Made by a program: the position numbers and the translations under genes
NCBI RefSeq assembly: GCF_000315625.1
Contig: NW_005434569.1
Coordinates: 62,001 to 126,000, forward strand
Length of the DNA stretch: 64,000 bases
Direction: 5' to 3'
Source of the DNA: Guillardia theta CCMP2712
Taxonomy: Eukaryota > Protista > Cryptophyta
The notes under the pieces: generated by a model
Seen by the model: only the letters and a program-made list of their open reading frames with translations
Databases searched by the model: none
What the model was told of the DNA's origin: nothing
In this document: piece after piece, positions 33,001 to 63,574 of the stretch
Layout: each line of letters starts with the position of its first letter
How positions within the stretch are numbered: position 1 is the stretch's first letter

Positions 33001-34669
33001 GTCTTCGTCTTCTCCTTCGTCTGGTCCATAGGTGGCAACCTCAACGACTCCTCCCTCCCAAAGTTCAACGGCTTCGCCCGCGAGCTCCTGGCCGGCCTCG
33101 GCCTCTCCCTGCCTTCCACTCCCTCCCTGTACGACAGCAAGGTCGACGAGCAGTCGGGAGCATGGAGCCACTGGGAGCAGTCCGTCCCGTCCTTCACCTA
33201 CAAGAAGGAGCTTCCCTTCTTCAACCTCATCGTCCCAACCATCGACTCAACCAGGGTCAAGTTCCTGATTCGGGCGGACATCGACGCCGGTTTTCACGTC
33301 CTCATTGGGGGAAACTCTGGCGTCGGCAAGACCGTCATGATCCAGGACTACCTCGAGAGCGCGGGAGAGAAGTTCGTGTTCCAGACCAAGTCGTTCTCAG
33401 CTCAGACCTCAGCCCGGGCCCTGCAGGCCTTCTTTGAGGAGAAGCTGGAGAAGATCAGGAAGAACCTGCTGGGCCCGCCGTCGGGCAAGAACTTCGTCTT
33501 CTTCATCGACGACCTGAACATGCCCATGACGGAGAAGTACGGGGCCCAGCCTCCTATCGAGCTGCTGCGGCAGATTATCAACGTCAAAGATGACAAGAAT
33601 GGAGGGTTCTACGACCTCAAGAAGATCGGCCTCTTCAAGCGCGTCCAGCATACCCAGTTCATCGCCGCTAACGCTCCTCCCGGGGGCGGACGGTCCGTGG
33701 TCACTGCCCGCCTCCTCCGCCACTTCCATCTCATCAACATCCCGGACCTGTCCGCCTCCACCATGAAGAAGATCTTCGTCTCCATCGCCAACGGCTTCTT
33801 CGCCGACTGGCCCTCCGACTTTGCGGGGCTTGCTGAGCCCCTGGTGGAGGGGACGCTGGGGGTGTACCAGGATATTCAGCAGGCGCTGCTGCCCATCCCC
33901 TCCAAGAGCCACTACACCTTCAACCTCCGCGACCTCGCCAAGGTCATCCAGGGTATCCTCATGGTGGAGGCGAAGCACGTGGAGGACGTGAACGCGCTGC
34001 TCCGGCTCTGGTGCCACGAGAGCTCTCGAGTCTTCCGCGACCGCCTGGTGGACGAGCACGACAGGAGCTGGTACGACGACAAGCTGGTGGAGGTGCTGGA
34101 GAAGAACTTCTCCAAGGCCTGGGGGGCCAGCGCGTTCGTGGACGTGGTGTGGGGAGACTTCTTGCAAGGGGAAGGGTCGCCCTACCTGGAGATCGCAGAC
34201 ATGGAGCTCGCAGCCTCCAAGTTGAAGGAGTTTGCGGAGGACTACACGCTCAACCTCAACAAGCCCATGGACCTCGTCTTCTTCAAGGACGCCATCCAGC
34301 ATGTCGGCAGGATCTCCCGCCTCCTTCGCCAGCCCCGTGGCAACGCGCTGCTGGTGGGAGTGGGAGGGAGCGGGAGGCAGAGCCTGACTCGGCTGGCGTC
34401 CTTCATAGCGGACATGAAGTGCTTTCAGATCGAGCTGTCGCGAGGATACGGTCTGAACGAGTTCCACGAGGACCTGAAGAAGCTGCTGATTCAGGCGGGG
34501 GCGGAAGGAAAGCCGACGGTCTTCTTGTTCACGGACACACAGATCGTGAAGGAGAGTTTCTTAGAAGACATCAACAACATCCTCAATGCTGGTACATCCT
34601 TCCTTCCTCCTTCCCTCATCCTCACCCTGCATGAATGCTGCTCCTGCTCCTGCTCCCGCTCCCGCTCCC

Positions 34670-34761
<92 letters not shown>

Positions 34762-36687
34762 TCATCTCCTCCGCACTCTTTCCTCTCCCTCTCCTCTTCT
34801 TCTTCTCTCTCAGTTTGTTGTTCCTCATCTCACAAGTCTTATTCAGGTGAAGTACCCGACCTATTTGCAAACGATGAGATGAGCAAGATCATTGATGCTG
34901 TTCGTCCCAAGGCAAAGGCTGCCGGCAGGTGAGACGCGTCAATGATGATGACGATGATGATCACGATGACGATGACGATGATGATGATGATTGCAAGGCT
35001 GGAGACAAAGGACTCTATCTATTCCTACTTTGTCCAACTTTGTCGAGAGAATCTTCATTGCGTCCTTGCTTTCAGGTGATTTGAACGCCCTTTTCTTCTC
35101 TATCTCTCCTCGCTTTCTCTCTCTTCCTCCTCCTCGCCCTCCTCTCTTCATCTTGCCTCCTATCTTCGGCCACCACAACCAGCTTTCCTTCGCTCCTCAC
35201 TTCTCCTCCTCTCTTGCTGATCTTCCGTCAGTCCCGTCGGAGATTCATTCAGGAATCGCCTCCGCATGTTCCCATCGCTCGTCAACTGCTGCACCATCGA
35301 CTGGTTCATGTCATGGCCCGAGGACGCGCTCATATCCGTTGCTAAACAGTTCCTTGCCAAGGTGAACTCCCCGCATGCATCTCCTTCTCCCCTTGCTCCT
35401 CCTCCTCCTCCTCCTCCTCCTCCATCGCCCTCTCCCCCTCCCCCTTCTTCCTCCTCTCCCCTTCCTCCTCCTCTTCCTCTTCCTCCTCCTCTCCCTTCTT
35501 TGCCCCCCTCTCTTCCTCCTCTTCCTCCTTTATCTCCTTATTGTCTTCTTCCGCTACATCTACTACCACCTCCTCCTACATCTCCCTCCCTCACGACATC
35601 ATCGTGAAACTTGCTCTCTCTCCCGTCCTCCTCTTCACCATCCTGCAGATCGATCTCGGCAGCACGGCTATCAGGAACGCCGTCTGCAACGTCTGCATGA
35701 CCATCCACTCCTCCGTGCGCAGCTGCGCCGCCAAGTTCCTGCAAGAGCTTAGGAGGCACACCTACACCACTCCCACCAGCTACCTTGAGCTGATCAACAT
35801 GTACACGTCGATGCTGGAGCAGGAGAGGAAGACCATCAACGACAAGGTGGAGCGCTACCAGAGCGGATGCGACAAGCTGGAGGCGACCAACGCCATGGTG
35901 TCGCAGCTCCAGGCTGAGATCATCAAGTTGCAGCCCGTGCTGGAGGTTGCGGGGAGAGAGACGACGGAGCTGATCAGTGTCGTCACCAAGGACAAGGAGG
36001 CGGCTGCTGTGGTGCAGGCCAACGTGGAGCAGGAGGCGACCAAGGTGAATCAGGCGACGAAGGAGGCAAATGCGATCAAGGAGGACGCACAGAAGGACCT
36101 GGACGAGGCTCTTCCTGCCTTCGACTCTGCGGTGAAGGCGCTCAAGGCGCTGAACAAGAACGACATCACGGAGATCAAGTCGTTCAGCAAGCCGCCGGAG
36201 ATGGTGCAGACGGTGATGGAGGCTGTGTGTATCCTCAAGGGAGTGAAGCCCAACTGGGACGAGAGCAAGAAGGTGGGTGATCATTATCATGATGAAAAGG
36301 AGGAGGAGGAGGAGGAGGAGGAGGAGGAGGAGGAGGAGGAGATTGGTATATGACCTTACGTGATATGATGCTGCAGCTGCTGAACGACAACAACTTCCTC
36401 GTTGGTCTTGAAACCTATGACAAAGACAATATCTCGGAAAAGATCATCCGCGGGCTTCAGAAATACATCAACAACCAAGATTTCGTGCCTGATAAGGTAA
36501 GATGAAGACAGATGAAATAGCAGGAGAAGCAAGGGATCAATGGAATACAGATAGTGATGAGACAGAGGGAGGGAGGGAGGGAGGGAAGGTGGGAGCGAGA
36601 CAGAGCGGAAGAGAGAAGGGAGAGAGGGAGGAAGGAAAGGAGCACAGGGACGAGGACGAGGACGAGGATGAGGACGAGGACGAGGAT

Positions 36688-36729
<42 letters not shown>

Positions 36730-39700
36730 TTAGATGTTCGCAGGTCGAGAAGGTGTCCAAGGCCGCAAAGTCTCTCTGTATGTGGGTCAGGGCCATGGAC
36801 GTGTACGCGCGAGTCGCCAAGAACGTCGAGCCGAAGAAGCAGAAGCTCGCAGAAGCTGAGAAGCAGGTGGGGAGCAGCTGGGCTGGTTGCCTGATGGACG
36901 GTCTTGTCCTTGCTGAACAGGTTCTGTAGGTGGCGGAGATGAGCAAACTGTTGGCGGCGAAGCAGAATGAGCTGCAGACGGTGCTGGATCGAGTGAGGGA
37001 GCTGGAGAACAAGCTGTCGGAGACGCTGAAGAAACGAGACGAGCTGCAGCAGCAGTCGGACGAATGTCAGGCGCGTCTGGGTCGAGCTGAACAGCTCACG
37101 GGTGAGAAGATCCGAGAGATTTGGCAGTTGATGATGATGATGATGATGGTGATGAGGATGATGATAAGGACGATGATGATGATGATGATGATGAGAACAA
37201 TGATGATGATGATGATGAGAACAATGATGACAACGATGATAACGATGGACGATCAGGCGGCCTTGCAAGTGAGCAGAGGAGGTGGACGGCGGAGCTGAAG
37301 CAGCTCAACCAGGACAAGATCGATCTCATTGGCAACATCCTCCTCTCCGCCGGCTCCATCGCCTACTCGGGGCCCTTCACCTCCACCTTCCGGCACCAGC
37401 TCATCCAGGAGTGGGTCGCCTCTTGCAAGGAGTATGAGATCCCCGTCGACAACCATTTCACTCTCGAGCGCGTCCTCGGGGACCCTCCCGAAGTCCGTCA
37501 GTGGAACATCCAAGGGCTGCCTGCTGACCCTCTCTCCGTCGAGAACGGCATCATCGTAACCCGCGGCCGTCGCTGGCCTCTAATGATCGATCCGCAGACG
37601 CAGGCGAACAGGTGGATCAGAGCGATGGAGAAGAAGAACAGGATCCAGGTGATCAAGCTTACTGAGAGCACCTACCTCCGCACCCTCGAGAACTGCATCC
37701 GGGTCGGCAACCCCGTGCTGCTGGAGAACGTGGAGGAGAATCTCGACCCAGCTCTAGAGCCCGTGCTCTCCCGCCAGGTCTTCAAGCAGCAGGGTCGCCT
37801 CCTTATCCGCCTCGGTGACACGGACGTGGACTACAGCCCGGACTTTCGCTTCTACGTTACTAGCAAGCTGCCGAACCCCCACTACCCCCCCGAGATCTGC
37901 GTCAAGGTGACGGTAGTCAACTTCACGGTGACGCCCAAGGGCCTCGAGGACCAGCTGCTGGTGCAGGTGGTGGCGCACGAACGGCCGGAGCTCGAGGAAG
38001 AGAAGAACAACCTCGTGCTGCAGATCGCGACCGGGCAGAAGCAGCTCAAGGACATCGAGGACAAGATCCTGCACATGCTCGCCGTGTCGCAGGGGAACAT
38101 CCTGGACGACACAGAGCTCATCGAGACGCTGGGAGCGAGCAAGACAACGTCGGTCGAGATCAATTCCCAGCTCGCCCAGGCCTCGGAGACTAAGACGAAG
38201 ATCGACACAGCATGTGAGGGCTACCGGCCCGTGGCGAAGAGAGGAGCGCTCCTGTACTTCGTGGTGGCAGACCTGGCAGGGATCGACCCCATGTACCAGT
38301 ACTCCCTCCAGTTCTTCGTGAAGCTCTTCAACAGCTCTATGGACCGAGCGGCTCACAGTGAGGACCTGGAGGAGAGGGTTCAGACCATGATCCGCGTTAT
38401 CACCGAGGACGTGTACACTCAAGTGTGCCGGGGGCTCTTCGAAAAGGACAAGAAACTTTTCTCGTTCCTCATCACCGTCCAGATCCTCCGGATGGAGCAG
38501 GAGAGCATCTCCGACGGAGAGTGGTCCTTCTTCCTCACCAAGGGAGGCTTCGTGGACGAGAACGACCTCCCTCTGAACCCGGCAGAGGACTTCATCAACA
38601 AGACAGTGCTCGGAGGGCTCAAGAACCTCGACGCGATCCCGACGTTCCACGGGGTGCTGGACAGCTTCAGGCAGGAGACGGAAGCATGGAGGGAATGGTG
38701 TCAAAACGACTCTCCTCAGGACCTGAAGCTGCCAGCTGGATGGGGGGAGCGGCTAAACGCCTTTCAGCAGCTGATGCTCATGCGAGTGCTGCGCGACGAG
38801 AAGGTCGTGGCGGCGGTAACGATCTTCATCCTCAACAACGTGGGGAAGTTCTTCGTGGACGTGCCCGCCTTCGACCTCGCGTCCTCGTACAAGGACTCCT
38901 CTCCCCTCATCCCCATCATCTTCGTGCTCTCGACGGGAGCAGACCCGACGCTCTACCTGCAGAACCTGGCCAGGGACATGGGCTTCTTCGAGCGGCTGAA
39001 GATGATCTCGCTGGGGCAGGGGCAGGGCCCCATCGCTGAGTCGCTCATCTCCATGGGGAGGGAGGGAGGAGACTGGGTGTGCCTGCAGAACTGTCACCTT
39101 GCTTCCTCGTGGATGCCTGAGCTCGAGAAGCTGCTGGAGAGCCATCAAAGCCTCAAGCTGCACGAAGACTTCCGGCTGTGGCTGACCTCGATGCCCTCCA
39201 AGGTGTTCCCAGCTAGCGTCCTGCAGTCTGGGATCAAGCTGACCAACGAGCCTCCCAAGGGGCTGAGAGCGAACCTGAAGCGAACGTACGAGGACTTGAC
39301 GGAGGAGGAGTTTGAATACTTCGACGTCAAGGAGGGCCTTGAGGACAAGGACAACAAGAGTCGAGCATGGAAGAAGCTGCTCTTCGGCCTGAGCTTCTTT
39401 CACGCGAGCATTCAAGAGAGGAGGAAGTACGGAGCCATCGGCTGGAACATCCGGTACGAGTGGAACCAGTCGGACCTGCTCACCGCCATGGCGAACTTGC
39501 GCATGTACCTGGAGGAGCAGAGCGAGGTCCCGTACGAGACTCTGAGATATGTGGTGGGAGATGTCAACTACGGAGGAAGAGTGACGGACTACATGGACCA
39601 GCGATGTGTTGCTGCTATCCTGAGCACCTACTTCTGCGACGAGGCTGTCCGCGACGACAACTACAGGTACACCGAGGATGGCAAGTACTATGCCCCCGTA

Positions 39701-40892
39701 CGAGGAGGCATCGAGGACACTCGGGAGTATGTCGACAACCTGCCCTTGCTCGATCGCCCCGAAGTGTTCGGCCTCCATCGCAACGCGGCCATCGCCTTCG
39801 AGAACAGCGAGACCAAGTACTTTGTGGAGACGATCATCTCCATCCAGCCTCGCAGCGGGGGAGGAGGAGGAGGCAAGTCGACGGATGAGATCGCTGCCGA
39901 GCTAGCAGCGGATCTTGCGAGCAAGCTGCCTGCGGTAATGGAGAGAATCTTTGTGCTTCAGCCCTGACTCGTTCCTCTTGCAGGCGCTGACCGACAAGAA
40001 CGCGGCGGAAGCAACCTTCGTCAAGGACAAGAACGGGGCCATGAACTCTCTGGGAACCTTCCTGCAGATTGAGATGGGCAAGTTCAACAAGCTGCTCAAG
40101 GCCATGTCGACGTCTCTCGACGAGCTTCAAAGGGCCATCAAGGGTACCATAGTCATGTCAGCGCAACTGGACGCCATGTATCAGGCTCTCATCTTCCAGC
40201 GGGTCCCCGACGTCTGGTCCAACGTTGGGTACCTCTCCCTCAAGCCCCTCGGCTCCTGGATCAAGGACTTCACGCAGAGGATGGACTTCATGTCCAGGTG
40301 GATCGAGCACGGACCCCCGGACGCCTTCTGGATGTCGGCCTTCTTCTTCCCGCAGGGCTACATGACCGCAGCGCTGCAGATGTACGCGAGGAACACCATG
40401 ATAGCCATCGACACCCTCGACTTCCGCACTCAAGTCCTCGCCATCACTCCCGAAGAAGTCGTCTCCAGCCCCAAGCAGGTGAGCCTCCTCCTGACCTCCC
40501 CCAGCAGGAGCTCATGGTGGTGCAGGGCGTCTACTTCTATGGCTCCTTCGTGGAGGGCGCGAGGTGGGATAGCAAGACAGGCTCGCTGGAGGAGAGCCAC
40601 GTCGGGGAGACTCACGTGTACATGCCTGTCATCTGGCTCGACCCCATAGTCAAGGACGACTCCTACGGCCGCGAGCCCGGCACGTACAACTGCCCCTTCT
40701 ACAAGGCAAGGGAGGAGCTGAGAAAGCAGAGAGACTGACTGCCCCCTTCAGGTCTCCTCGCGTGCTGGGACGCTCTCCACGACCGGTCACTCCACCAACT
40801 ACATCAGAAGCCTTCAGCTCCCGGCTGGCAACAGCTCATCAGAGCACTGGGTGAGAAGGTCCGTAGCGCTGCTGTCGTCGTTGGACGACTAG
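27039..40892 (+). CDS. DNAH6: Axonemal dynein heavy chain, inner-arm DNAH6-like, 12 introns; exact start codon uncertain
   Basis: FPRFYFLSNDELLEIL; P-loops GPAGTGKT, GVTAVGKT, GNSGVGKT and GVGGSGRQS; stalk/MTBD; GRRWPLMIDPQ; NEPPKGLRANL; C-terminus AGTLSTTGHSTNY...LDD*. The N-terminal YDLVVVP...FTISASGVVH...IPFFKNY motif resembles the DNAH6 class. The subtype call is less certain than the family call. Confidence 0.93.
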
Positions 40893-46547: not shown

Positions 46548-49124
46548 CTACCCAGCGTGCCTGCTCTCGGAGCTGATGCTCTTCGCGGCATCGTGAACAC
46601 ATTTGAAGACATCCCTGGATTCTCTCGGAATCTCCTCTAGACGGTACAAGAATTTATCCTTCCTGTCTTTGTGTCCTGGGAACAGGCGCGGGCTAGCCAC
46701 CCTCCATCGCTCGTACATGAGCATCATACGGGCACGATGGAAGACCCACCGCCTGTTCTTTCCTTCACAGTCTCGCTTGTAACGGGAGTTCATCATCGCA
46801 ATCAGCAGGTTCATGATGAGGATTCTGGAGAGGATTACCCAAATCACCTCGAGCGTGACCGCGAGATTCCTGTCCTGGGAGTGCAGGGCGAGCACGTGAA
46901 AGTACATGTAAGCGTCCCCCAGCGAGTTCCATACGAGAGCCCAGGCGGTGGCCAATGGGTTTCTTGTGTAGTCGAAGTCGGTTGAATACCTGAGTTGCCA
47001 GCTGCTGCTGTTTTGAAACATGAGGTAGATAGCGGCAGTGAAGCCGAACATGAAGATCAAGTAGACGATGAGACAAATGAGAACGTCTTGAAACATGATG
47101 TCCTCCATGATCATCACAAGCTTGCCCACTGGATGGTATGGTATGGCAACGTAGAGTAGGGTGAGAAAGGAAAAGAGAGCCGCCAACGAAAGGAAACTGA
47201 GCTCAACCTTGTAGTTGCCTACCTCTTGCAAGCCGAAGGACGTCAGGACCGTTGTGGCTGTGAGTATACACAACAATGAGAGCATGTTCTTCTGCAGCAG
47301 TTGGCTCAAGCACTGTAGCAGTTTCCGCTCTTTCGGCTTCGCTCCCCGAAGCAGCAATGAGTCCAAGCGCCTCGAGGACAAACCATACACCAGCAGACAA
47401 ACACTGAAGAAGACAAGAATGATACTGACAATTCTTGTTTGAGCGTCTGGAATACTTGATACATCACCAATCGGAGCACCAGACAGCGGAAAGAAGTTAG
47501 AACGGAAAGCAGAAGTCCGCAAGTGAAGCAAGTAGCAGAACAGAGCCAGGTAGATAATGTATGGAAGCAGCACGAAAAAGAAAAATATATGCCTGCATGA
47601 TTTCCATTTGTTCGTGAGCAATTCTTCAAACACGTGGTCATCACAAAACTCTGCAAGCTCGAAGTTCACGATAATTTCAAACACGCTCTTCCATTTGTCG
47701 TGTTGGTGTAAACTGGAGACCTCCTTGTCATCCGAAGAGTTCTTCACACCATAGTTGTCCAGCTGTTCACAGCTGACCTTGGTGTAGCGCTTAGCCCCGA
47801 ACCGCCATTCAGTCTTCTTCATGTGCTGATCAACGATGTATTGATAAGTTCGGACCTGACCATGACGGACAGCGAGAGTGAAAGGGGTGTAGCCTGCATC
47901 ATTCAGAGTGCACAAGAGCTTTGACACATAATGTTCTTGCTCTCCTGTTTGACGACTCTCCCGGCTCTCCGCAGAGCCACCTTGTAATCCCTCTTGTGAC
48001 TTTTGACCCTGTAGTGCTGATCCATCTTCGCTGCGAGAAGCTTGTTGTGTTGGAACTGCCGAACTCTCACCTTGTTGATCGTGATTCTGCCCTATTTCAG
48101 CCACCCCTACTTCCCTGCCTGTGTTGGTGGAGTTCAGCTTTTCTTGTTTCTCCTTTTCCTTTTCAGCTTCTTTTAGCTCATGTTCTTTTTTGAGGAGGAA
48201 GTCGATCATGTCTTCGTGACCATGAAGTACAGCTATATGCAGCGCATTGTTCCCACTGCTGTCAACTTGAGTCAAAACTCTCCACTGCACGTCATTACTT
48301 AGCCTTGCAAATATCTTGTTGCAGATTTCCACGTTTCCCTGGCTTGCTGCAAACGATAAAGGGAACTCTCCGAAGTAGGCGAATGATTGACTGTAGGAAT
48401 GTATGTTCACGATTGCATCACAACCGTAGTCCTCATGCGATCTGTCGATTCCGAGGATACCGAGCATCCATCTCTGAAATGTGGTGATCTGTGCTTTTTT
48501 TCTCATCACCAAAGGCTGAAAGAAGAGTCCAGTGGCTTTTAGCCCTAGCAGGATCTCAAGTTTATCGCCTGCTTTCTTGAGAATCCCGTCGATGCTCTTG
48601 CAGTCGTTGTTTGCTATGCAGATATGCAAGATGCTCTCCCCGGTGTAAATGCCCAGGTCCTGTGGCTGCCCTCTTGGCCCGTCATGCTCATAGCAACACT
48701 CAAGCAGTGCGGTCAACTCGTCGAAATTGAACGCTTGATCCATGATCCTCCGCTGATTTGGATGTCCATATGCCAGCAAGAACACAAGGTGCACCGGGTG
48801 TTCGCCCATCGGGCCTCGGGGAGAGCTTTGTTCGCTATGGCGGGGAGAGCTTTGTTCGCTATGGCGGGGAGAGCTTTGTTCGCTATGACGGGGAGAGCTT
48901 TGTTCGCCGTGAGCAATCAAGTGGCGAAGCTTTTCTTTGATCTGACTGTCATCCACGGCGGCAAGCAGCTTCTTCATATTCTTCCACGCCGGTGTTTCAT
49001 GCTGCTCCGCTCGTCGCTCTACTCTCTCCACGTCGAGCCGAGGGTTGAGGTAGCGGGACTCGAGTTCACTCTTGCTTGTACTTGTCCATCCCTTCACGAT
49101 TAGACTTCGCCTTTCACGTTCCAT
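46548..49124 (-). CDS. TRPV-like cation channel (ankyrin repeats plus 6 TM), intronless
   Basis: GESILHICIA, ATGLFFQP, YFGEFPLSFAASQG, GNNALHIAV, GYTPFTLAV, WRFG, LLTNKW, six hydrophobic helices, IMNLLIAMMNSRY and a TRP-box-like WVFHRARMML. The likely start is Met66 of the listed ORF. Confidence 0.92.
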   Translation of the reverse strand: MERERRSLIVKGWTSTSKSELESRYLNPRLDVERVERRAEQHETPAWKNMKKLLAAVDDSQIKEKLRHLIAHGEQSSPRHSEQSSPRHSEQSSPRHSEQSSPRGPMGEHPVHLVFLLAYGHPNQRRIMDQAFNFDELTALLECCYEHDGPRGQPQDLGIYTGESILHICIANNDCKSIDGILKKAGDKLEILLGLKATGLFFQPLVMRKKAQITTFQRWMLGILGIDRSHEDYGCDAIVNIHSYSQSFAYFGEFPLSFAASQGNVEICNKIFARLSNDVQWRVLTQVDSSGNNALHIAVLHGHEDMIDFLLKKEHELKEAEKEKEKQEKLNSTNTGREVGVAEIGQNHDQQGESSAVPTQQASRSEDGSALQGQKSQEGLQGGSAESRESRQTGEQEHYVSKLLCTLNDAGYTPFTLAVRHGQVRTYQYIVDQHMKKTEWRFGAKRYTKVSCEQLDNYGVKNSSDDKEVSSLHQHDKWKSVFEIIVNFELAEFCDDHVFEELLTNKWKSCRHIFFFFVLLPYIIYLALFCYLLHLRTSAFRSNFFPLSGAPIGDVSSIPDAQTRIVSIILVFFSVCLLVYGLSSRRLDSLLLRGAKPKERKLLQCLSQLLQKNMLSLLCILTATTVLTSFGLQEVGNYKVELSFLSLAALFSFLTLLYVAIPYHPVGKLVMIMEDIMFQDVLICLIVYLIFMFGFTAAIYLMFQNSSSWQLRYSTDFDYTRNPLATAWALVWNSLGDAYMYFHVLALHSQDRNLAVTLEVIWVILSRILIMNLLIAMMNSRYKRDCEGKNRRWVFHRARMMLMYERWRVASPRLFPGHKDRKDKFLYRLEEIPRESRDVFKCVHDAAKSISSESRHAG
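48820..48912 (-). repeat. 24-bp coding repeat (H[SG]EQSSPR x4) in the TRPV N-terminus
   Basis: Four near-identical units. Confidence 0.9.
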
Positions 49125-50374
49125 CCTCCCTCCTCTCTCTATCGCTGCCTGCTTCCACGTCCCTTGTCTCCTGCCGCTTCTCTTCCTCCCCCCCCCCAAC
49201 TGTCGGGGATGTTCGCCAGGATGTTGGCTACATCTGTGGATTGCTCGCCCCCCTATTCTCAGAAGACGAAAAATTACTGTCTTTTTATTTATATTAATGT
49301 CATTCCGAGGCAGACTCACTTACATAGGAAAAATATCCCATTGCTGCATTTTTATAATTATTTGTATTCTCGAGATGAACCTGCTGATAGGCAAATTTAC
49401 TAAAAATAAACTGCAATTAGATCCGTTCCAGTACCATTGGCAAAATATGGATTTAATTTTGTATTATATTATATCTACATTACTGGGAGAGTTGCATTTT
49501 CAGGTACTGTTTCCACCACACTGTGTACAAATATCCTTCTACACAATTATGACTTAAATATATATAGAAAGATAAAACAATACGATCAATACGAACTTGT
49601 TTTTTAAACTAAAAGTCGTGCCGCGGTCGAGGTGTCTAGTTGGTTTATGGCCTCTGCGCAGGAGAGGGGCCGGTGGCGGGAGCAGGAGGATGGAGACGGA
49701 AGGAGGAGGAGCGAGAGCAGAGGAACGTAGAGTCTCTGTTAGGAGAGGACGAAAACAGACCCTTCTCAAGGAGTTGCGGTGAATTGAAGAGGCAGGGAGG
49801 AGACAACGGGTGGCTGGCAAGGGCTGGAGCCTTCACGGGGTGGTTTGATCCTCCGTGCTGAACCTTGGAAGACGAGGGAGGGAAGAAGCTGAGCCGGACA
49901 AGCAGATATAAGAAGAGTCTGCTTTCAAACAAACACATCAAAACCGTGCAGCAAGGATTGTCCGCTTCTTCTCAGCTTGAACAAAGCACATTGCCCGGTT
50001 TCTTTGTTTCTACGATTCCACTGAAGTCTGCGACAATACGTCTTGAAAGACTTTCTCAATAAAGAAAATAGGAAATTGAGAATTTGATTTCCTTGTTGGG
50101 CCCTCCACGAATACGTTATAGGTAGAGCGACCCTGTTGAAACGTGATTGAAATGCAACAGCTTTTACTGTGTACCGAAGACATTTGATTCGGAGTCCGTA
50201 ACCTGTTGCATCTACATCATCAACCTGCGCTCAACGACTTAAAGAATTTGTGAGGGTGAGAATCGTGTGAAGCTGCGCATTGAGGGACTCCGAGCTTTGC
50301 TGGTTCCTGGACAAGCAATCAATTCGCGTTGACTGCGTCGACGAACTTGTGTTGGATTCAAGTCAGTGTTGAGA

Positions 50375-55935: not shown

Positions 55936-56279
55936 GACTTCTGCCCACCACCCACGGAAGGATCGGCAAGATCTTAGATGCAAGATTAGCACAGTGAGCA
56001 TGCGACGTCTCGTCACGGTATACGACAGAACTCTTGAGATACAAACACACCTAACTCTCAATAACTCTCATCTTCATTATACCATCAAGACTGACATCCA
56101 TGCCCACATGTTAAATCTTAGCGCCACACACTCTTATCAAACAAATCAGCTATATGTAGGATCTACTTCTTTCCATGGAGCCTTCTTCTCGCTGTCGGTT
56201 CTTCTATCACACACCACATCTGATTTCGTGGCTAGTTTGCCATCCGCAAATTCAAATTCACCTTCTCTTATTCCTACAT

Positions 56280-56665
56280 CCTCCCTCTCTCCTCTCCTCT
56301 CCTCTCCTCTATCCTCTCCTCTCCTCTATCCTCTCCTCTCCTCTCCTCTATCCTCTCCTCTCCTCTCCTCTCCTCTCCTCTCCTCTCCTCTCCTCTATCC
56401 TCTCCTCTCCTCTCCTCTCCTCTATCCTCTCCTCTCCTCTCCTCTATCCTCTCCTCTCCTCTCCTCTCCTCTCCTCTATCCTCCCCTCTCCTCTCCTCTC
56501 CTCTCCTCTCCTCTCCTCTCCTCTCCTCTCCTCTCCTCTCCTCTGTCCTCTCCTCTCCTCTCTCCTCTCTCCTCTCCTCTCCTCTCCTCTCCTCTCCTCT
56601 CCTCTCCTCTCCTCTCCTCTCCTCTCCTCTGTCCTCTCCTCTCCTCTCTCCTCTCTCTCTTATCT
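56280..56665. repeat. (CTCCT)n pentanucleotide microsatellite with CTATC variants
   Basis: Nearly pure polypyrimidine tract of about 380 nt. Confidence 0.95.
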
Positions 56666-56724
56666 CCTCCTCCCTCCCCTCCCTCTTTCCCTTGTCCTTT
56701 CCCCGCCTCTCTCCTGAACATTTT

Positions 56725-56740: not shown

Positions 56741-57465
56741 TCGGAACTTTCATAAGAATGTCATCGTTGTAAGAACTCGGATAAGTTCTTGGAGACGGCG
56801 AGAAGTTCAGGGTATTGCGTCTCATCGATGGACGAAGCTCAGCGAGATGGAAGTGGGTTTCGACATAGGTCTGGAATTAAGGAATCGACGAGCCTGAGGG
56901 TCAGGCGGAGAAGAGGGGGTTAGGAGGACACGTGTCGACGGCGCGCTGTGCATTGTACTTGGTTGCAAGGGACTGAAGGGAAGGTGACTGCTGTGAATAA
57001 AGGAAGTGTTGGTGGTGTTGTGTGGTTCTTCTGAGAGTTCTATCATCATCAGTGAAGGTGTTGGAGACTGCACAGCTGTGTATCGTTGAGGTGAATAAGG
57101 TTGGTGTAAGGATCTCAGGTGTACTGAGAGTTAGTCTTTGGTGGATCTTGGGTTAAATAGATTCTGGCCAGTGAGGTGGAGGTTGATTCGATTACAAAGA
57201 GAAAATTTTCTCTTTGTTCTCAGTTCTCATTTTTTTTACTGTTGTTGCGCAACTGTGATTTACCGTACGGTCTGAACTGGAACAAAGAGTAAGTTCGGTT
57301 CATTGTTGCTATTTGAGTCGGTGATTCGATTGTTTGGAATCGTTGTTTGGAAGTTGGACTCGATTTTTTGCATTTTTTACGCTTGTGCTTGGAAGCTCAG
57401 TTTGGAAGGTCGGAGTCGATTCTTGTGTGGAACGTTGCTACTGATTTTTCGACATTGCTTTTACC

Positions 57466-60400
57466 ATGGGAGGAGGAAAATTGGACCTCAGTGAAGAATT
57501 GATCAAGACTCATCCTGAGTTACAGATGGACACATTCCTCAAAGGATCGGTGACGTCACAGGAGGAATTGGATGAACTTTTGCTTCCGATTCAGAATGCA
57601 ATGAATCGTTATCGGACAGGATTGGGCTTGTGTCTTTTCCCGCTGATACGAGAGTTTCCACTCGATCAACTCGGTAATTTTGGTGGTGAGTTTCATACTG
57701 TATGGGAAAAGAACAAGAGTGTGAATGTGGATGGCGAGTTGACGGAGGAATGGAAAAGGCAGGTCGTTTTGCTTTTCCTGAATGCCAAATTTTGTTGGAG
57801 GAAGAGCGGGCAGATTCGAGATTATGTGGAGCAGTTGCAAAATTTGTCCAAGACGGTGTCGGATCAGTATGGTAGTCCTGTTGATGACGGTGATTCCGGC
57901 AACCCAGTGAGTGCTTCTCAGAGTGGCAAGAAGAAAAAGAAGGGGGTAAGCCGAAGGGATTCTGATGGCAAGGAGATGGATGCCGCGATGATTAACGCGT
58001 TATATGAAGACGTTGAATATTTTCTCCTGGAGCTTGGCCAATACTTTCGATCCTATCTGAAGCCATTATTTCCTGTTCCATGGGCTATGTCAGGAGGATT
58101 CAAGTCCAAGTTGGCTCCGATCAAAGCTCTGGCGTATATGATATGGGAAGTCAGAAAGCGCAGTGGGAATCTCAATGCCACTCCGGATAAAACGCGGATG
58201 GAGCTTCTGACGCTGGCAAAGTCGAAATTGCCTGACATATCTACCTTCCACAGCGTTATGGTCCAGATGAAGATCCTGCTTAACAAGTTGGAAGATGTAG
58301 CGGGAGAGGAATCTGTGAAAGCCTTGGAAATGATTTTGGTGGAGGAGCTGATCAAGCAATGTTATGTTTCAGATTGTATTGATATTCGAGATGTCGCGCG
58401 CTTGAATAAGCGGTCCAAGTTGTCAACCGAATTGACTTGGGAGGAGGTGTACTCTTGGGCTGTGAATTTGCATGATGAACAGGTATTTTTTACTGCTGGG
58501 GGTGAGAAAACACAGTCGGGCACTGCGTCAGTTAATGTGGCAGCCTCGGAGGTGCAAGCTACGGTCAGTCAACCGAATGCAGACAAGGCGTCTGAAAGTG
58601 GAGGACAGGGTGGTAAGGAAAAGGGAGACTCGAGAGGCAGCAATGAGTCGTCGCCTGTGGATAATGCATCTGGCAGTCAGGAGGATGGAAGCACGTTGGA
58701 CGCGAGGGAGAGTACGCGAGGCCGAGGTGAGCCTCCGGGTCAGGGAATGCGGCGCAGGGGCGCCTACCATGTTGATGGGTCTCGTGGCGGCTACGGTCGT
58801 GGAGGCTCCGCTGGTGCTGGATCGAATGATTTTCGAAATCACCAAGGAAGAGCCGGTGGTTTTCAAGGGAATAATTTTCGGGGAAGAGGCTCAGGATTTC
58901 GAGGTCATCATCAGCAGCGGGGGAAGCCGTATGATCGTCCGGCTGGTAGAGGGATGCGCGGACGAGGTAGAGGGGAGCATTGGACGACGCATAACTACAA
59001 TCCACGCAGAGGCGAGTCTGATGGTTTCTCAAGAGGTGATCGTTCGGGAGGATATCATGAGCGGCGAAACAATGTGCATGAATTTTCTCCTCAGGCTCTC
59101 GGCGAGGCGGTACTGCGCTTGGCCAGGGAAATCCAGGGGGGAAGGAGGTCAGGTGCAGACGGTGAGCAGCCGGTTGGACCATGGCAGGAGACGTTTGAGC
59201 CTAACCATCGGGGACGTGGCCGTAGTCCGGTGTCGGACAATCCTTTTGAGAGGACGGTACAGCAAAATGTTTCAGAAAGCAATGCTCAGGCAGGTCGCCG
59301 TCAGGCGGAATGGCGATCCTTCTTTGCGTTTCAGTTTGGCATTGATTCAACGATGTCGATGACTGATATTCAAGGAATGGCAATGCAGAGTATGGTGGGA
59401 GACGGTGACGGAAGGGTTGTCAATTTTTTGCTTGATTCGGGTGCAAATGTTACCATGGTTGGGGACGAATCCCTCCTCTCAGACGTACAATCGGGAGACG
59501 ATTTCTTTGTCATGACGGCAGGAGGAAAGATTAATTGTACCAAGTATGGCAAGCTAAATTTGCAAATTGTCGGTGCAGATGGTGAGTCGGACAATATAGT
59601 ATTGGAGAATGTTCGAGTTTGTCCTGTCCTTCCTGTACCACTTGTGAGTCTGGATGATTTTCTGGGATCCAAGTATTACATTGTTGCACGGGGGTCGAAG
59701 AACACGGTCAAATCCTATGTGGCTTCGGAGGATGGCAAGATCAGGATTCCTCTGATTCAGCGGGACAAGTTGTATTTGTTGACAACCAGAGGTCCGATGC
59801 ATGATTCTGTGGCAGGTGATGTGCCAATCTTTTGTGTTTCAGCGGAGGCTGGAACAGTTTGTTTGACTAAAGCACATGTCACTCCTGGACCTTCTTTCGA
59901 TGGGCAGTCAACACAGAGTCTATCTGATGCGGTTCTGTGGCACATGAAAACGGGGCACCCTGATTGTCGAGTACAGAAGTTGCTTGCGGATACGGTCAAA
60001 TACATCACATTCAATAGGCGGTTGATTCATTCTCCGTGTCACGTGTGTAGGATTTCGAAATTTGTGTCACGCCCTGTTCACAAACAAACCTCATTTCGAC
60101 AGGAACGTGTTGGAGATGTAAATGCTCTGTGGTACGTAGACTTGAAAGATATGGTGGCAGTCTCTGAACCATCGGGTTATCGTTACTTTCTTATAGTTGT
60201 CGACGCTTTTTCCGGATACCTGATTGTGCGTCCCATGAAGTCCAAGAGTCAAACGAGTGATATTCTGATGGAGTTACTTCGACAGGAGGAGAAAAGTGTC
60301 AAGAGAAACGGAGTTCAACGCATCATATCTGATAACGGCAGTGAGTTTTCTTCTTCAGAGTTGGAGGCATTCGTTCGTGAGACGGGTTTGAAGTGGGATC

Positions 60401-61986
60401 GGATTCCTGATTACAGTCAAGTTTACAATTCGCTGGCTGAGAGAGGAATTCGAGCAGTCAGTACTATCCACAGAACTTTGCTCAAACAGAGTGCTTTGCC
60501 TATCGAGAAATGGGAATTTTCTGTTATGCAGGCTACGTACTTGTACAATGCTCTCCCGAGTTTCAGGAATTTCGGCAATCTTTCTCCGTATACAATCTAT
60601 AATGGAGATGTTTTCGACTTCAAATCTCTCAAGACCTTTGGGTGTATGACATTCTTCAAGAATAATGTACGCAGTTCGAAGATTGAAGATCCAGCTAAAC
60701 AGGGCATTATGCTCGGAAATGCAAACGCTTTTCCTGGGCATACCATTGGCTACTTGGTATGGTGTGTTGACGACAACAAAATCTATCACACGAATAATCT
60801 GACCTGTGATGAATTCTTCTTTCCATTTCGACGTGCGGGACGGATGAATTGGCAAGAGGATCCTGAAGTGGTGGTAAAGCACGATATTGACATGGAGGAT
60901 GATTCGCCTGTCAAGGGTGTTGAAGATGAACGGTCAGAGGCAGTGAATGCTGGGACTAGTGGTCGTCGAAAGAGAACACGGTTGGAGGATCATTCACTGG
61001 AGTCGGATGATGAGGGGGTAAGGGCTGCTGAGATGGTGTGCCAGGACAGCGATGAAGATTATGTGCCTACAGTGATGGTTGACGGTGGCCGAGAGGATGC
61101 GGATCATACGGATACAGAGGCAGCGTCGTCGACCAAAACATGTCGTACCAGACGAGACTTTCGTAAGCAGAGACGGGATGCCGAAAACCGCTTCATCAAC
61201 AGGCGGGCTGAAGTTGTAATGGATGATGGGAAGGTTCGAACGGGGACGATTACTCAAGTTGTCTTCAAAGACGATACATTCTTGGTGCGTGTTACGTTTG
61301 ACGACAAGTACTGGATATTAATCCATCCGGACAGTGAGAGCGTACGGATTTTGTCTATGGGGAAGGAAGTTACCATGATTGCTATGTCGGAGGCAGAGAC
61401 ATCTGAGTTGTTGCCTGGGGATGAGCTACAATCAGGAGTTTTGCCGAAGAATGTCTTCGAGTTGACAGGGTGTAACGATTATTACTTTCGAGCGTTTCCT
61501 CAAAAGGGGGATAACATCCTTTCGCAGCTGGTGGAAAAGACAGTTCGAGGAAATCCCGATGTCTTTCTTATGCACAGGAAGTCTCCTCTGTCATCTCAGC
61601 TGGTACCTGGAAAGGTGCTCAACGGCGATGGAAAAGAGGTACTGTTCGTATTGGACGAGGGTAATCGTTCGACTACTTCTCAGCACTCTGCACGATGGAT
61701 ACCATTGAGACGGGAACGGTGGAATGATGTGGTCCCACTCATGGAGCCAGGGGATGACATTGATGTTGCTCGTGATCCAGACTGTATTGATCTTGGTACA
61801 AGTGAGTTGACACAATGTTTTCCCAGACTCTCGTATGCTTGTCACCAACATGGCGCTAGTTGTTCCTGTATGGGAAGCTGTCAAACTCTCTGCAGCATTT
61901 CTGTCGCGAGCTCCGCCATCAGTACAAGACTCGAGTTCGACGGCAGATCCTCGCAATCGAAGGGAGATGTTGTTGCACAAGGATAG
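57466..61986 (+). CDS. Copia Gag-protease-integrase polyprotein with a C-terminal extension
   Basis: FLLDSGANVTM (protease), LWHMKTGHP...CHVC (HHCC), YVDL, ISDNGSEF and LAERG with D(35)E spacing, and LKTFGC. Confidence 0.93.
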   Translation: MGGGKLDLSEELIKTHPELQMDTFLKGSVTSQEELDELLLPIQNAMNRYRTGLGLCLFPLIREFPLDQLGNFGGEFHTVWEKNKSVNVDGELTEEWKRQVVLLFLNAKFCWRKSGQIRDYVEQLQNLSKTVSDQYGSPVDDGDSGNPVSASQSGKKKKKGVSRRDSDGKEMDAAMINALYEDVEYFLLELGQYFRSYLKPLFPVPWAMSGGFKSKLAPIKALAYMIWEVRKRSGNLNATPDKTRMELLTLAKSKLPDISTFHSVMVQMKILLNKLEDVAGEESVKALEMILVEELIKQCYVSDCIDIRDVARLNKRSKLSTELTWEEVYSWAVNLHDEQVFFTAGGEKTQSGTASVNVAASEVQATVSQPNADKASESGGQGGKEKGDSRGSNESSPVDNASGSQEDGSTLDARESTRGRGEPPGQGMRRRGAYHVDGSRGGYGRGGSAGAGSNDFRNHQGRAGGFQGNNFRGRGSGFRGHHQQRGKPYDRPAGRGMRGRGRGEHWTTHNYNPRRGESDGFSRGDRSGGYHERRNNVHEFSPQALGEAVLRLAREIQGGRRSGADGEQPVGPWQETFEPNHRGRGRSPVSDNPFERTVQQNVSESNAQAGRRQAEWRSFFAFQFGIDSTMSMTDIQGMAMQSMVGDGDGRVVNFLLDSGANVTMVGDESLLSDVQSGDDFFVMTAGGKINCTKYGKLNLQIVGADGESDNIVLENVRVCPVLPVPLVSLDDFLGSKYYIVARGSKNTVKSYVASEDGKIRIPLIQRDKLYLLTTRGPMHDSVAGDVPIFCVSAEAGTVCLTKAHVTPGPSFDGQSTQSLSDAVLWHMKTGHPDCRVQKLLADTVKYITFNRRLIHSPCHVCRISKFVSRPVHKQTSFRQERVGDVNALWYVDLKDMVAVSEPSGYRYFLIVVDAFSGYLIVRPMKSKSQTSDILMELLRQEEKSVKRNGVQRIISDNGSEFSSSELEAFVRETGLKWDRIPDYSQVYNSLAERGIRAVSTIHRTLLKQSALPIEKWEFSVMQATYLYNALPSFRNFGNLSPYTIYNGDVFDFKSLKTFGCMTFFKNNVRSSKIEDPAKQGIMLGNANAFPGHTIGYLVWCVDDNKIYHTNNLTCDEFFFPFRRAGRMNWQEDPEVVVKHDIDMEDDSPVKGVEDERSEAVNAGTSGRRKRTRLEDHSLESDDEGVRAAEMVCQDSDEDYVPTVMVDGGREDADHTDTEAASSTKTCRTRRDFRKQRRDAENRFINRRAEVVMDDGKVRTGTITQVVFKDDTFLVRVTFDDKYWILIHPDSESVRILSMGKEVTMIAMSEAETSELLPGDELQSGVLPKNVFELTGCNDYYFRAFPQKGDNILSQLVEKTVRGNPDVFLMHRKSPLSSQLVPGKVLNGDGKEVLFVLDEGNRSTTSQHSARWIPLRRERWNDVVPLMEPGDDIDVARDPDCIDLGTSELTQCFPRLSYACHQHGASCSCMGSCQTLCSISVASSAISTRLEFDGRSSQSKGDVVAQG

Positions 61987-63574
61987 AGAATTGTGGGAGG
62001 CAGCTGAACGAGCTGAGATTCAAAAGATGGAAGAAAGGCGAGTTTGGGAAGTGGTCCCGAGGTCTGATGAAACTCGAGGTAAAATTCTTGCGAGAGCGAT
62101 GTGGGTTTATTCATCAAAGAGAGATTTACATGGCAACATTCTGAAGAGAAAAGCAAGGTTGGTTGTGATGGGCAATCTTTTACCCACGTCCGAGGAGTTG
62201 TTTGCGCCGACGACGTCGATGGATAACATTCGGTTGTTACTCAGCATAGCGGCAGGAAATGGATGGATTATCGCCTTCCGAGATATCGCGGCCGCGTTCC
62301 TATACAGTGAATTGAACGAACCGATGTTCATGATACCGCCTGACATCATGGCTTTGCCTCCGAATGTTTTGCTCAAAGTAACCAAAGCGATATATGGGAC
62401 GCGAACGGCTCCGCGACGATGGTGGGAAAAGCTGTCTCGGGAATTCCTGCGTCTGGGAGCGGAACCTGTGGGACATGATGAAATCATTTACAGATATGAA
62501 CACAACGGCTCAAGAATTCTCATCACGACATGGGTGGATGATCTTCTCCTGGTATGTGAGAATCAAGAAGTCTGTAATTATTTTTTGGACTGCTTGAGCA
62601 AGGTATTCGACTTTTCTGGAAGTGAAGCTACAGGTACATTCCTGGGTATTCGTGTTCACCAAGATTTGACGAAAGGAACTATTACCTTGAGTCAGAAGCA
62701 TTTTATTGAACAGCTGGTTGAGAAATTTGGAATAGCTCTTCGTTCAGTGTTTACTATCTTGCCTGGAGTGTACATGCGGAGTTATCATCTAGAGGGAGAA
62801 TTGTTGGATAAGTTCTCGGTGAGACAATATCAGGCTCTTCTTGGAACAATCTTGTACGTTGCTAATGGGACAAGAGCTGATATTTCATTCGCGGTCAGTC
62901 TCTTAAGCAGATTTGCACGGGCACCCAGAGTGCGTGACTGGGATGCATTGGTTCACTTGGCGAGGTATCTGTACACGACGAGAGATATTTGTATTGTTTA
63001 CCATCAGAGAGGTGTATCTGTTAATCAGGAGGTGTTTCACAATGAACTCGTAGCTGCGAGTGATAGTGACTGGGGGACGGATGTCTTGACGCGACGAAGT
63101 CAGTCCGGATGGGCTATCGTAATGAACGGAGGAGTTATTTCATATGGTTCGAAAGCGCAGAAAGTGATATCACTTTCATCGTCAGAGGCAGAAATCTATG
63201 CGACATCGGTAGTCGCCAAGCATATCAAGATGTATCGAAGCTTACTTCAACAGTTAGGGTTTTGCCAGCAACGTCCGACGATGCTCCTGCTGGATAATGA
63301 GCCGTGTATTCGTTTGTTGACCGAGAAACGAGCATATTCTAGACTGAAGCACATCGACTTACGTGCTAAGTTTGCTGTTCTCATGGTGGATGAGGGAGAA
63401 TTACTTCCTGTGAAAGTTCCTACTAAGTTTCAGCCTGCGGACCTGTTCACGAAAATTCTGCCGTTTACGAGGTGGAAAGCAATTGGTTCGTTTCTATTTG
63501 GAGAAGATTTCAACGCTCAAGGGGTATGCTGCAGTGATGACTCTCATCCTAATGAGAACGATGGCACTCTGTGA
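61835..63574 (+). CDS. Copia reverse transcriptase-RNase H, in the +1 frame relative to ORF1
   Basis: DPRN...WEAAERAEI, KARLVVMG, FAPT, DIAAAFL, KAIYGTRTAPRRW, WVDDLL, SDSDWG, RRSQSG, SSSEAE, KHIDLR and ADLFTK. Confidence 0.95.
   Translation: MLVTNMALVVPVWEAVKLSAAFLSRAPPSVQDSSSTADPRNRREMLLHKDRELWEAAERAEIQKMEERRVWEVVPRSDETRGKILARAMWVYSSKRDLHGNILKRKARLVVMGNLLPTSEELFAPTTSMDNIRLLLSIAAGNGWIIAFRDIAAAFLYSELNEPMFMIPPDIMALPPNVLLKVTKAIYGTRTAPRRWWEKLSREFLRLGAEPVGHDEIIYRYEHNGSRILITTWVDDLLLVCENQEVCNYFLDCLSKVFDFSGSEATGTFLGIRVHQDLTKGTITLSQKHFIEQLVEKFGIALRSVFTILPGVYMRSYHLEGELLDKFSVRQYQALLGTILYVANGTRADISFAVSLLSRFARAPRVRDWDALVHLARYLYTTRDICIVYHQRGVSVNQEVFHNELVAASDSDWGTDVLTRRSQSGWAIVMNGGVISYGSKAQKVISLSSSEAEIYATSVVAKHIKMYRSLLQQLGFCQQRPTMLLLDNEPCIRLLTEKRAYSRLKHIDLRAKFAVLMVDEGELLPVKVPTKFQPADLFTKILPFTRWKAIGSFLFGEDFNAQGVCCSDDSHPNENDGTL

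Follow-up and report, generated by a model that had tools for sequence, protein, structure and literature searches.

A conserved, predicted Tudor-like module between integrase and reverse transcriptase in a Ty1/copia clade of Guillardia theta: a candidate for chromatin tethering

A module of about 70 amino acids (aa), predicted to contain a Tudor-like barrel, was found between the integrase and the reverse transcriptase (RT) of a Ty1/copia element in the cryptophyte Guillardia theta. The element occupies about 8.5 kb at 56768-65272 (+) of a 64,000-nucleotide stretch of the CCMP2712 assembly (contig NW_005434569.1, positions 62,001 to 126,000 of the forward strand; hereafter “the window”, from whose first letter positions are counted), and its 3' part lies beyond the window end. 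The module (61150-61353, +) follows the integrase core, the integrase SH3-like domain and an acidic linker. Its distribution and the selection acting on it confirm that the segment is a real, discrete, conserved protein domain and not a product of chance. Alignment-based modeling supports a Tudor-like fold, i.e. a five-stranded antiparallel SH3-type barrel; this support reaches the level of the fold only, and homology to Tudor domains is not established. The barrel, possibly together with a second conserved block, may be a chromatin reader that the element itself encodes and that directs copia integration, a doubtful but possible reading that is drawn from the predicted structure.

Results

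Position and sequence of the module

The coding features on which the analysis depends were the following.

57466-61986 (+): open reading frame (ORF) for gag, protease and integrase; 1506 aa in the window copy (ORF list and Pfam)
60121-60414 (+): integrase catalytic core, rve (aa 886-983; PF00665, E 7.5e-13, above the curated cut-off)
60613-60825 (+): integrase C-terminal SH3-like domain (aa 1050-1120; PF25597 SH3_retrovirus, E 4.3e-8, above the cut-off)
60826-61143 (+): acidic linker with a basic RRKRTR patch (aa 1121-1226; 29 D/E vs. 14 K/R, net charge -15)
61150-61194 (+): conserved basic helix leading into the barrel (model residues 8-22; AlphaFold2 predicted local distance difference test score, pLDDT, ~87; net charge +4)
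61204-61353 (+): predicted five-stranded Tudor-like (SH3-type) β-barrel (model residues 26-75; from the AlphaFold2 model, structural neighbors and purifying selection)
61438-61722 (+): second conserved block of ~95 aa (families A, A2 and B and Hanusia; absent from family C)
61835-63574 (+): ORF for RT and RNase H (RVT_2 at 62042-62737; PF07727, E 4.8e-36)

A preliminary description of this DNA had reported a peptide segment at 61186-61360, after the integrase and an acidic linker. This interval (+) is free of stops and encodes the quoted peptide inside the ORF at 57466-61986, and its placement was borne out by the translation, the order of the Pfam domains and the net charge of the linker. No change of frame separates the SH3_retrovirus domain from the module, which begins 108 aa beyond it. 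In an integrase-to-RT alignment of the families, the only part of the linker that could be aligned was a block of ~75 aa, which is the module. One family (L028-L030) has the module block only, without the ~130 aa downstream of it, and the block was therefore regarded as a discrete unit.

All alignments comprised natural copies only. In alignment A1, which holds the module block of four copia families, the invariant residues of the whole module are R-T-R, D-F, R, E, N-R, Q, V-F, F, D and W; within the helix, R, T, R, D, F, R and E are invariant. The helix is possibly a nuclear localization signal (NLS) or a contact helix. The barrel is slightly acidic, with a net charge of -2.

The possibility that the module arose by duplication of the integrase SH3-like domain of the element (PF25597) was rejected, the hhalign comparison of A1 with alignment A3 having returned a probability of 0.1. 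DUF7258 (PF23919) scored 15.2 bits for the segment against a cut-off of 27, and one of nine family members matched it; its Atlas feature score (0.87) was below the 0.9 level. This match was treated as chance or as that of a generic small barrel.

For the second conserved block, the ratio of nonsynonymous to synonymous change (ω) between subfamilies was 0.124 and the AlphaFold2 pLDDT was below 50. No match to it was found in Pfam, the PDB or the Atlas. The notion that it is a second copy of the barrel received no support from a comparison of the two (probability 0.04).

A single contig record, from run X11, skips 50 bases of the barrel-coding region (61283-61334) with GT..AG ends; it is probably attributable to misassembly or to a defective copy.

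Distribution and selection

When the 87-Mb assembly was searched with the A1 profile, the module was located at 26 genomic places, all in copia context. Four copia families share it; in A1 they are 35-39% identical to the window copy. A protein search of the assembly returned the region in near-identical copies and in copies that were 31-35% identical, lying in open frames as long as 2179 aa. The RT of the module-bearing G. theta families is 100, 83, 64 and 46% identical to the window RT, and the profile search of the genome gave no module match in G. theta copia lineages with RT identity ≤35%; module-less lineages are located, for instance, at C29:454921 and C22:109873. The module therefore follows RT relationships, as would be expected if one cryptophyte copia clade had acquired it a single time, at its base; judged from the sequences, this gain would predate the divergence of the four families, and selection would have kept the module since then.

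In an exhaustive HMMER search with A1, eight of 1.84 billion protein representatives matched, and one of these was dismissed as a spurious low-complexity repeat. The seven genuine matches are pieces of copia polyproteins from MMETSP Guillardia, from Hanusia phi (P0008 and P0009) and from JGI/ENA environmental assemblies, and no cellular protein bearing the module was found among the representatives. A word-indexed protein search recovered only the element's own transcript-derived protein. The preliminary description had held that the segment is not a standard copia feature, and the exhaustive search, which found only a handful of cryptophyte-type copia sequences, agrees. The conservation that it had proposed to check, in genomic copies and related algae, was found as well (26 places, four families and H. 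phi).

Selection was assessed by comparing the window subfamily with the C85 subfamily through Nei-Gojobori counts. For the module, the proportion of nonsynonymous differences (pN) was 0.157 and that of synonymous differences (pS) was 0.807, which is purifying selection; the acidic linker is relaxed (ω 0.61). The pattern is thus not chance, because it occurs at 26 places in four families, is the sole alignable block of the linker and has pN far below pS.

The module is shown to be retained in transcript-derived sequences. P0001, an MMETSP-derived G. theta protein, is 100% identical over the module region searched, and integrase, module and RT are colinear both in this protein and in a 3.9-kb contig of run X1. 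Raw RNA-seq reads (X23) gave thin coverage of the element and thus little information on the level of expression. Two deletion derivatives of family B, L019:115-3279 (G000:C66) and the transcriptome-derived P0002, have neither protease nor integrase; in these, gag is almost directly joined to the Tudor-like module and RT.

Predicted fold

The model that AlphaFold2 produced from the single sequence of 61150-61830 was poor (mean pLDDT 40) and was superseded by one calculated with an alignment of natural copies. The latter features a helix (residues 8-22) and a five-stranded barrel (strands E26-30, E36-47, E50-56, E62-65 and E72-74), with pLDDT values of 87-94 over these elements and below 50 in the remainder.

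Structural neighbors were sought among 48,161 chains using VIA, a search independent of Foldseek. The top neighbor was the RDM15 Tudor domain (7de9_A; Z 6.8, root-mean-square deviation (rmsd) 2.4, 56 of 58 residues aligned), followed by PHF19 (Z 6.6-6.7) and 53BP1 (Z 6.5-6.6). Also ranked high were the RBBP1 chromobarrel, MTF2, the ERCC6L2 Tudor, TbTudor and SMN (Z 5.9), and royal-family readers accounted for ~29 of the top 50 rows. In a second structural search, PHF1 (4hcz_A) was aligned over 58 of 58 residues (Z 6.6, 19% identity), and PHF20 Tudor 2 had a Z of 6.5. The Foldseek template-modeling (TM) scores by target were 0.70-0.74 for PHF1, PHF19 and RDM15, and no Foldseek match to the PDB had E ≤0.001. 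Long Foldseek alignments to the SETDB1 triple Tudor were distrusted (rmsd ~15). The fold check by AlphaFold and Foldseek, as proposed in the preliminary description, thus came out in favor of a barrel when the alignment was supplied. A profile search against PDB sequences gave chance matches only (e.g., uS11m), and the BFVD viral library and the Atlas shape search gave only generic small barrels.

Positions of a potential aromatic cage were mapped from the aligned ranges (SMN 90-145 vs. model residues 17-76; PHF1 28-85 vs. model residues 16-79). Using the residues that presumably form the cages of SMN (W102, Y109, Y127 and Y130) and PHF1 (W41, Y47, F65 and F71), the mapped positions fall near model residues 30/31, 37/38, 57 and 61/62. 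Position 57 is F or Y and position 62 is W in all members; position 59 is D or E; and position 61 is Y, but D in family C. An aromatic/acidic cluster (F/Y57, D/E59, Y61 and W62) is accordingly kept on the β3-β4 side.

Boundaries, reading frame and genomic surroundings of the element

The remaining features of the element were as follows.

56768-57196 (+): 5' long terminal repeat (LTR), 429 bp, TG...CA; direct repeat 100% identical over 155 nt
aa 654-731 of the ORF at 57466-61986 (+): Pol_BBD (Pfam)
aa 817-865 of the ORF at 57466-61986 (+): gag_pre-integrs (Pfam)
61820-61822 (+): C-run, CCC in the window copy and CC in the copies on C57 and C223
64846-65272 (+): 3' LTR, outside the window; 99% identical to the 5' LTR by genome search

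The genome search placed the LTR pair on the contig at C105:118768-119196 and C105:126846-127272; for family A alone, LTR matches number ~44. Because the LTRs are 99-100% identical at those positions, the element is regarded as young and ~8.5 kb in length. With LTRs present and the integrase domains upstream of RVT_2, its organization is that of Ty1/copia.

The RT is out of frame with the integrase only in the window copy, because the C-run is one base longer there. The one letter at 61822 is absent from contigs of three sequencing runs, and integrase to RT is encoded in a single reading frame in P0001 and in the C57 copy. An intron or a programmed frameshift between integrase and RT was ruled out, as other copies and contigs with one base fewer read through.

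Between the pol stop and the 3' LTR lie ~1.27 kb (63575-64845, past the window end) of non-coding, purine-rich and internally repetitive DNA, an unusual length among copia elements. On the upstream side, 85 bp separate the 5' LTR from the end of a ~400-bp (CTCTC)n microsatellite (56279-56682). The element is located downstream of a dynein heavy-chain gene (ORFs at 27039-39967) and a gene for an ankyrin/ion-transport (channel) protein (46551-49319, -), in a gene-rich neighborhood.

Elsewhere in the assembly, several different copia elements stand 5-25 kb apart (G000:C85:336900-369293 and G000:C4:1225528-1234314). Among 43 RT loci in 87 Mb, two pairs are less than 10 kb apart vs. ~0.2 expected. 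This clustering hints at islands of transposable elements or at a shared insertion preference.

Discussion

Possible roles of the module

The most likely role of the module, argued by analogy and held with some reservation, would be to serve as a tether, encoded by the element itself, that biases integration. Once the complex of integrase and complementary DNA had entered the nucleus, the barrel would anchor it to a chromatin-associated ligand, whether a chromatin protein or the tail of a histone, and this tethering would skew the choice of insertion site. The module would stay with the integrase after processing, bind chromatin and affect target choice. It lies in the post-integrase tail, the region that holds the known copia targeting determinants, and its predicted fold is that of chromatin readers.

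Several observations weigh against such a tether. Pfam hmmscan, run at E up to 10 on the segment and on all nine members of alignment A2, returned no Tudor, chromo, PWWP or Agenet profile (the reader profiles considered were Pfam TUDOR, Tudor_2, SMN, LBR_tudor, Agenet, PWWP and Chromo). All Z values are below 8, and the list of neighbors grades into the barrels of KOW, BirA-C, FlgD, PsaE and R67 DHFR. The AlphaFold2 model was built from only the nine natural sequences of A2. In the cage mapping by aligned ranges, positions 30/31 (V/M/L/D) and 37/38 (R/E and T/Q/A/N) are non-aromatic. The window copy, the one copy examined in this respect, sits between ordinary genes in no obviously special chromatin region. 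Finally, the module could travel with RT instead of with the integrase.

Judging from the aligned sequences, then, only half of a canonical cage appears to be conserved, and a classical four-aromatic methyl-lysine pocket is doubtful; a ligand may be bound in a different mode. It is because no Pfam reader profile matched, Z stayed below 8 and half a cage is conserved that the assignment is made at the fold level only. The Tudor/SH3-barrel pattern put forward in the preliminary description stands as far as the predicted barrel and its Tudor neighbors are concerned (pLDDT 87-94, Z 5.9-6.8); it falls short in having no Pfam Tudor profile and no Z of 8.

A lower but still appreciable probability is assigned to a role in replication, in which the module would be a structural or nucleic-acid-binding domain at the integrase-RT junction that serves polyprotein folding or processing, particle assembly or RT activity. 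This role would suit the location of the module between integrase and RT, ahead of the second conserved block, on which purifying selection acts too. It would also suit the retention of the module with RT in the deletion derivatives L019 and P0002, which have neither protease nor integrase. The C-terminus of Ty1 integrase supports RT activity, and SH3-type barrels that bind nucleic acids are known (KOW and the C-terminal domain of retroviral integrase), some of them among the structural neighbors of the module. However, the net charge of the barrel (-2) sets it apart from typical nucleic-acid-binding barrels; replication proceeds without the module in other copia lineages, some of them in the same genome; and chromatin readers dominate its structural neighbors.

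It is unlikely that the module is a classical reader of histone methyl-lysine or methyl-arginine, with an aromatic cage that guides integration to a specific histone mark. The top structural neighbors are readers that possess a cage and whose structures were determined with H3K4me1, H3K36me3 or dimethyl-arginine ligands, and F/Y57, Y61, W62 and the acidic residue at 59 are conserved where half a cage would sit. Yet at the other half of the cage (the end of β1 and the start of β2) families A, A2 and B and Hanusia have no aromatic residues; none of the reader profiles matches, and family C has D in place of Y61.

A module for nuclear import, in which the basic stretch of the helix and the upstream RRKRTR patch form a bipartite NLS while the barrel serves as a scaffold or contacts importin or a nucleoporin, is less probable again. 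An NLS requires no folded 50-aa barrel under purifying selection, and family C is devoid of the upstream basic patch, although R-T-R and further basic residues are invariant, the net charge of the helix is +4 and Ty1 integrase has a bipartite NLS in the same region of its tail.

That there is no real domain, only a chance resemblance in a disordered linker, might be read from the mean pLDDT of 40 for the single-sequence model and from the sub-threshold DUF7258 match as the sole Pfam signal, but it has next to no probability, having already been contradicted by conservation across four families and a second genus, by pN far below pS and by pLDDT values of 87-94 with the alignment.

Relation to known systems

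Chromoviruses are Ty3/gypsy elements with a chromodomain after the integrase (Gao et al. 2008, as cited in PMC12477816 and PMC3605345). As in chromoviruses, a small royal-family-type barrel, conserved in its clade and presumed to be a chromatin tether, is encoded downstream of an LTR-retrotransposon integrase. The Guillardia element differs in belonging to Ty1/copia (RVT_2, with the integrase before RT) and in having a predicted Tudor-like barrel with no match to Chromo (PF00385); its module is also internal, between integrase and RT, whereas the chromodomain is at the C-terminus of Pol. The chromovirus-like position that the preliminary description had drawn attention to is thus correct insofar as a reader-type domain is predicted downstream of the integrase, and is otherwise only analogous.

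Gypsy-10_Ec32 of Ectocarpus has a C-terminal Tudor domain and was described as the first transposable element with a Tudor domain (PMC12477816). Both it and the present element are algal LTR retrotransposons whose Pol carries a Tudor-type domain beside the integrase. Compared by description, Gypsy-10_Ec32 is a Ty3/gypsy element of a stramenopile with a recognizable Tudor domain, while the present one is a copia element of a cryptophyte in which the domain is known from predicted structure only.

In copia elements, targeting through the integrase tail is exemplified by the Ty5 targeting domain, which acts with Sir4, and by Ty1 integrase, which acts with Pol III AC40 (PMC5911963). Targeting determinants of Tal1 and Evade are placed in the C-terminal region of the integrase in work cited by a brown-alga preprint (bioRxiv 10.64898/2025.12.07.692804), which describes these two copia families as encoding no chromodomains. 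The Guillardia element belongs to the same superfamily, and its module occupies the same tail, beyond the integrase core, that decides target choice. In Ty1, Ty5, Tal1 and Evade the determinants are short motifs or substitutions in a disordered tail, unlike the folded barrel of ~50 aa with a leading helix that is predicted here.

The Tudor domains of PHF1/PHF19/MTF2, RDM15, PHF20, 53BP1 and SMN are five-stranded barrels of the same size and topology as the model. In the structures compared (PDB 4hcz, 6wau, 5xfr, 7de9, 3qii, 2g3r and 1g5v), Z was 5.9-6.8 over 51-58 residues with an rmsd of 1.9-3.0, and the alignments cover nearly the entire target domain. The module differs from those domains in its low identity to them (8-20%), in the absence of profile similarity, in the non-aromatic β1/β2 half of the cage and in its additional N-terminal basic helix.

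A tether of the proposed kind has a counterpart in LEDGF/p75, whose PWWP domain tethers HIV-1 integrase. There, too, a royal-family barrel links an integrase to marked chromatin; it is supplied by a host protein, whereas here it would be encoded by the element. In the literature searched, no report was found of a reader-type domain in copia elements or in elements of G. theta.

Implications

The site of insertion decides how harmful a retrotransposon is and how it shapes the genome. Ty3/gypsy elements have repeatedly captured chromatin-reader domains, and for Ty1/copia elements target choice has been attributed to short motifs within a disordered tail of the integrase. If the module does act as a chromatin tether, copia elements would also have taken the reader-domain route, in a third independent case of convergence, and the module would constitute the first targeting system guided by a reader domain in Ty1/copia, independent of the chromovirus chromodomain and of the Tudor domain of the Ectocarpus Gypsy element and built on a sequence family without detectable cellular relatives. 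This absence of relatives bears on the origin of such modules. With ~70 aa, the module would also offer a compact means of studying how chromatin is targeted in cryptophytes, about whose chromatin biology little is known.

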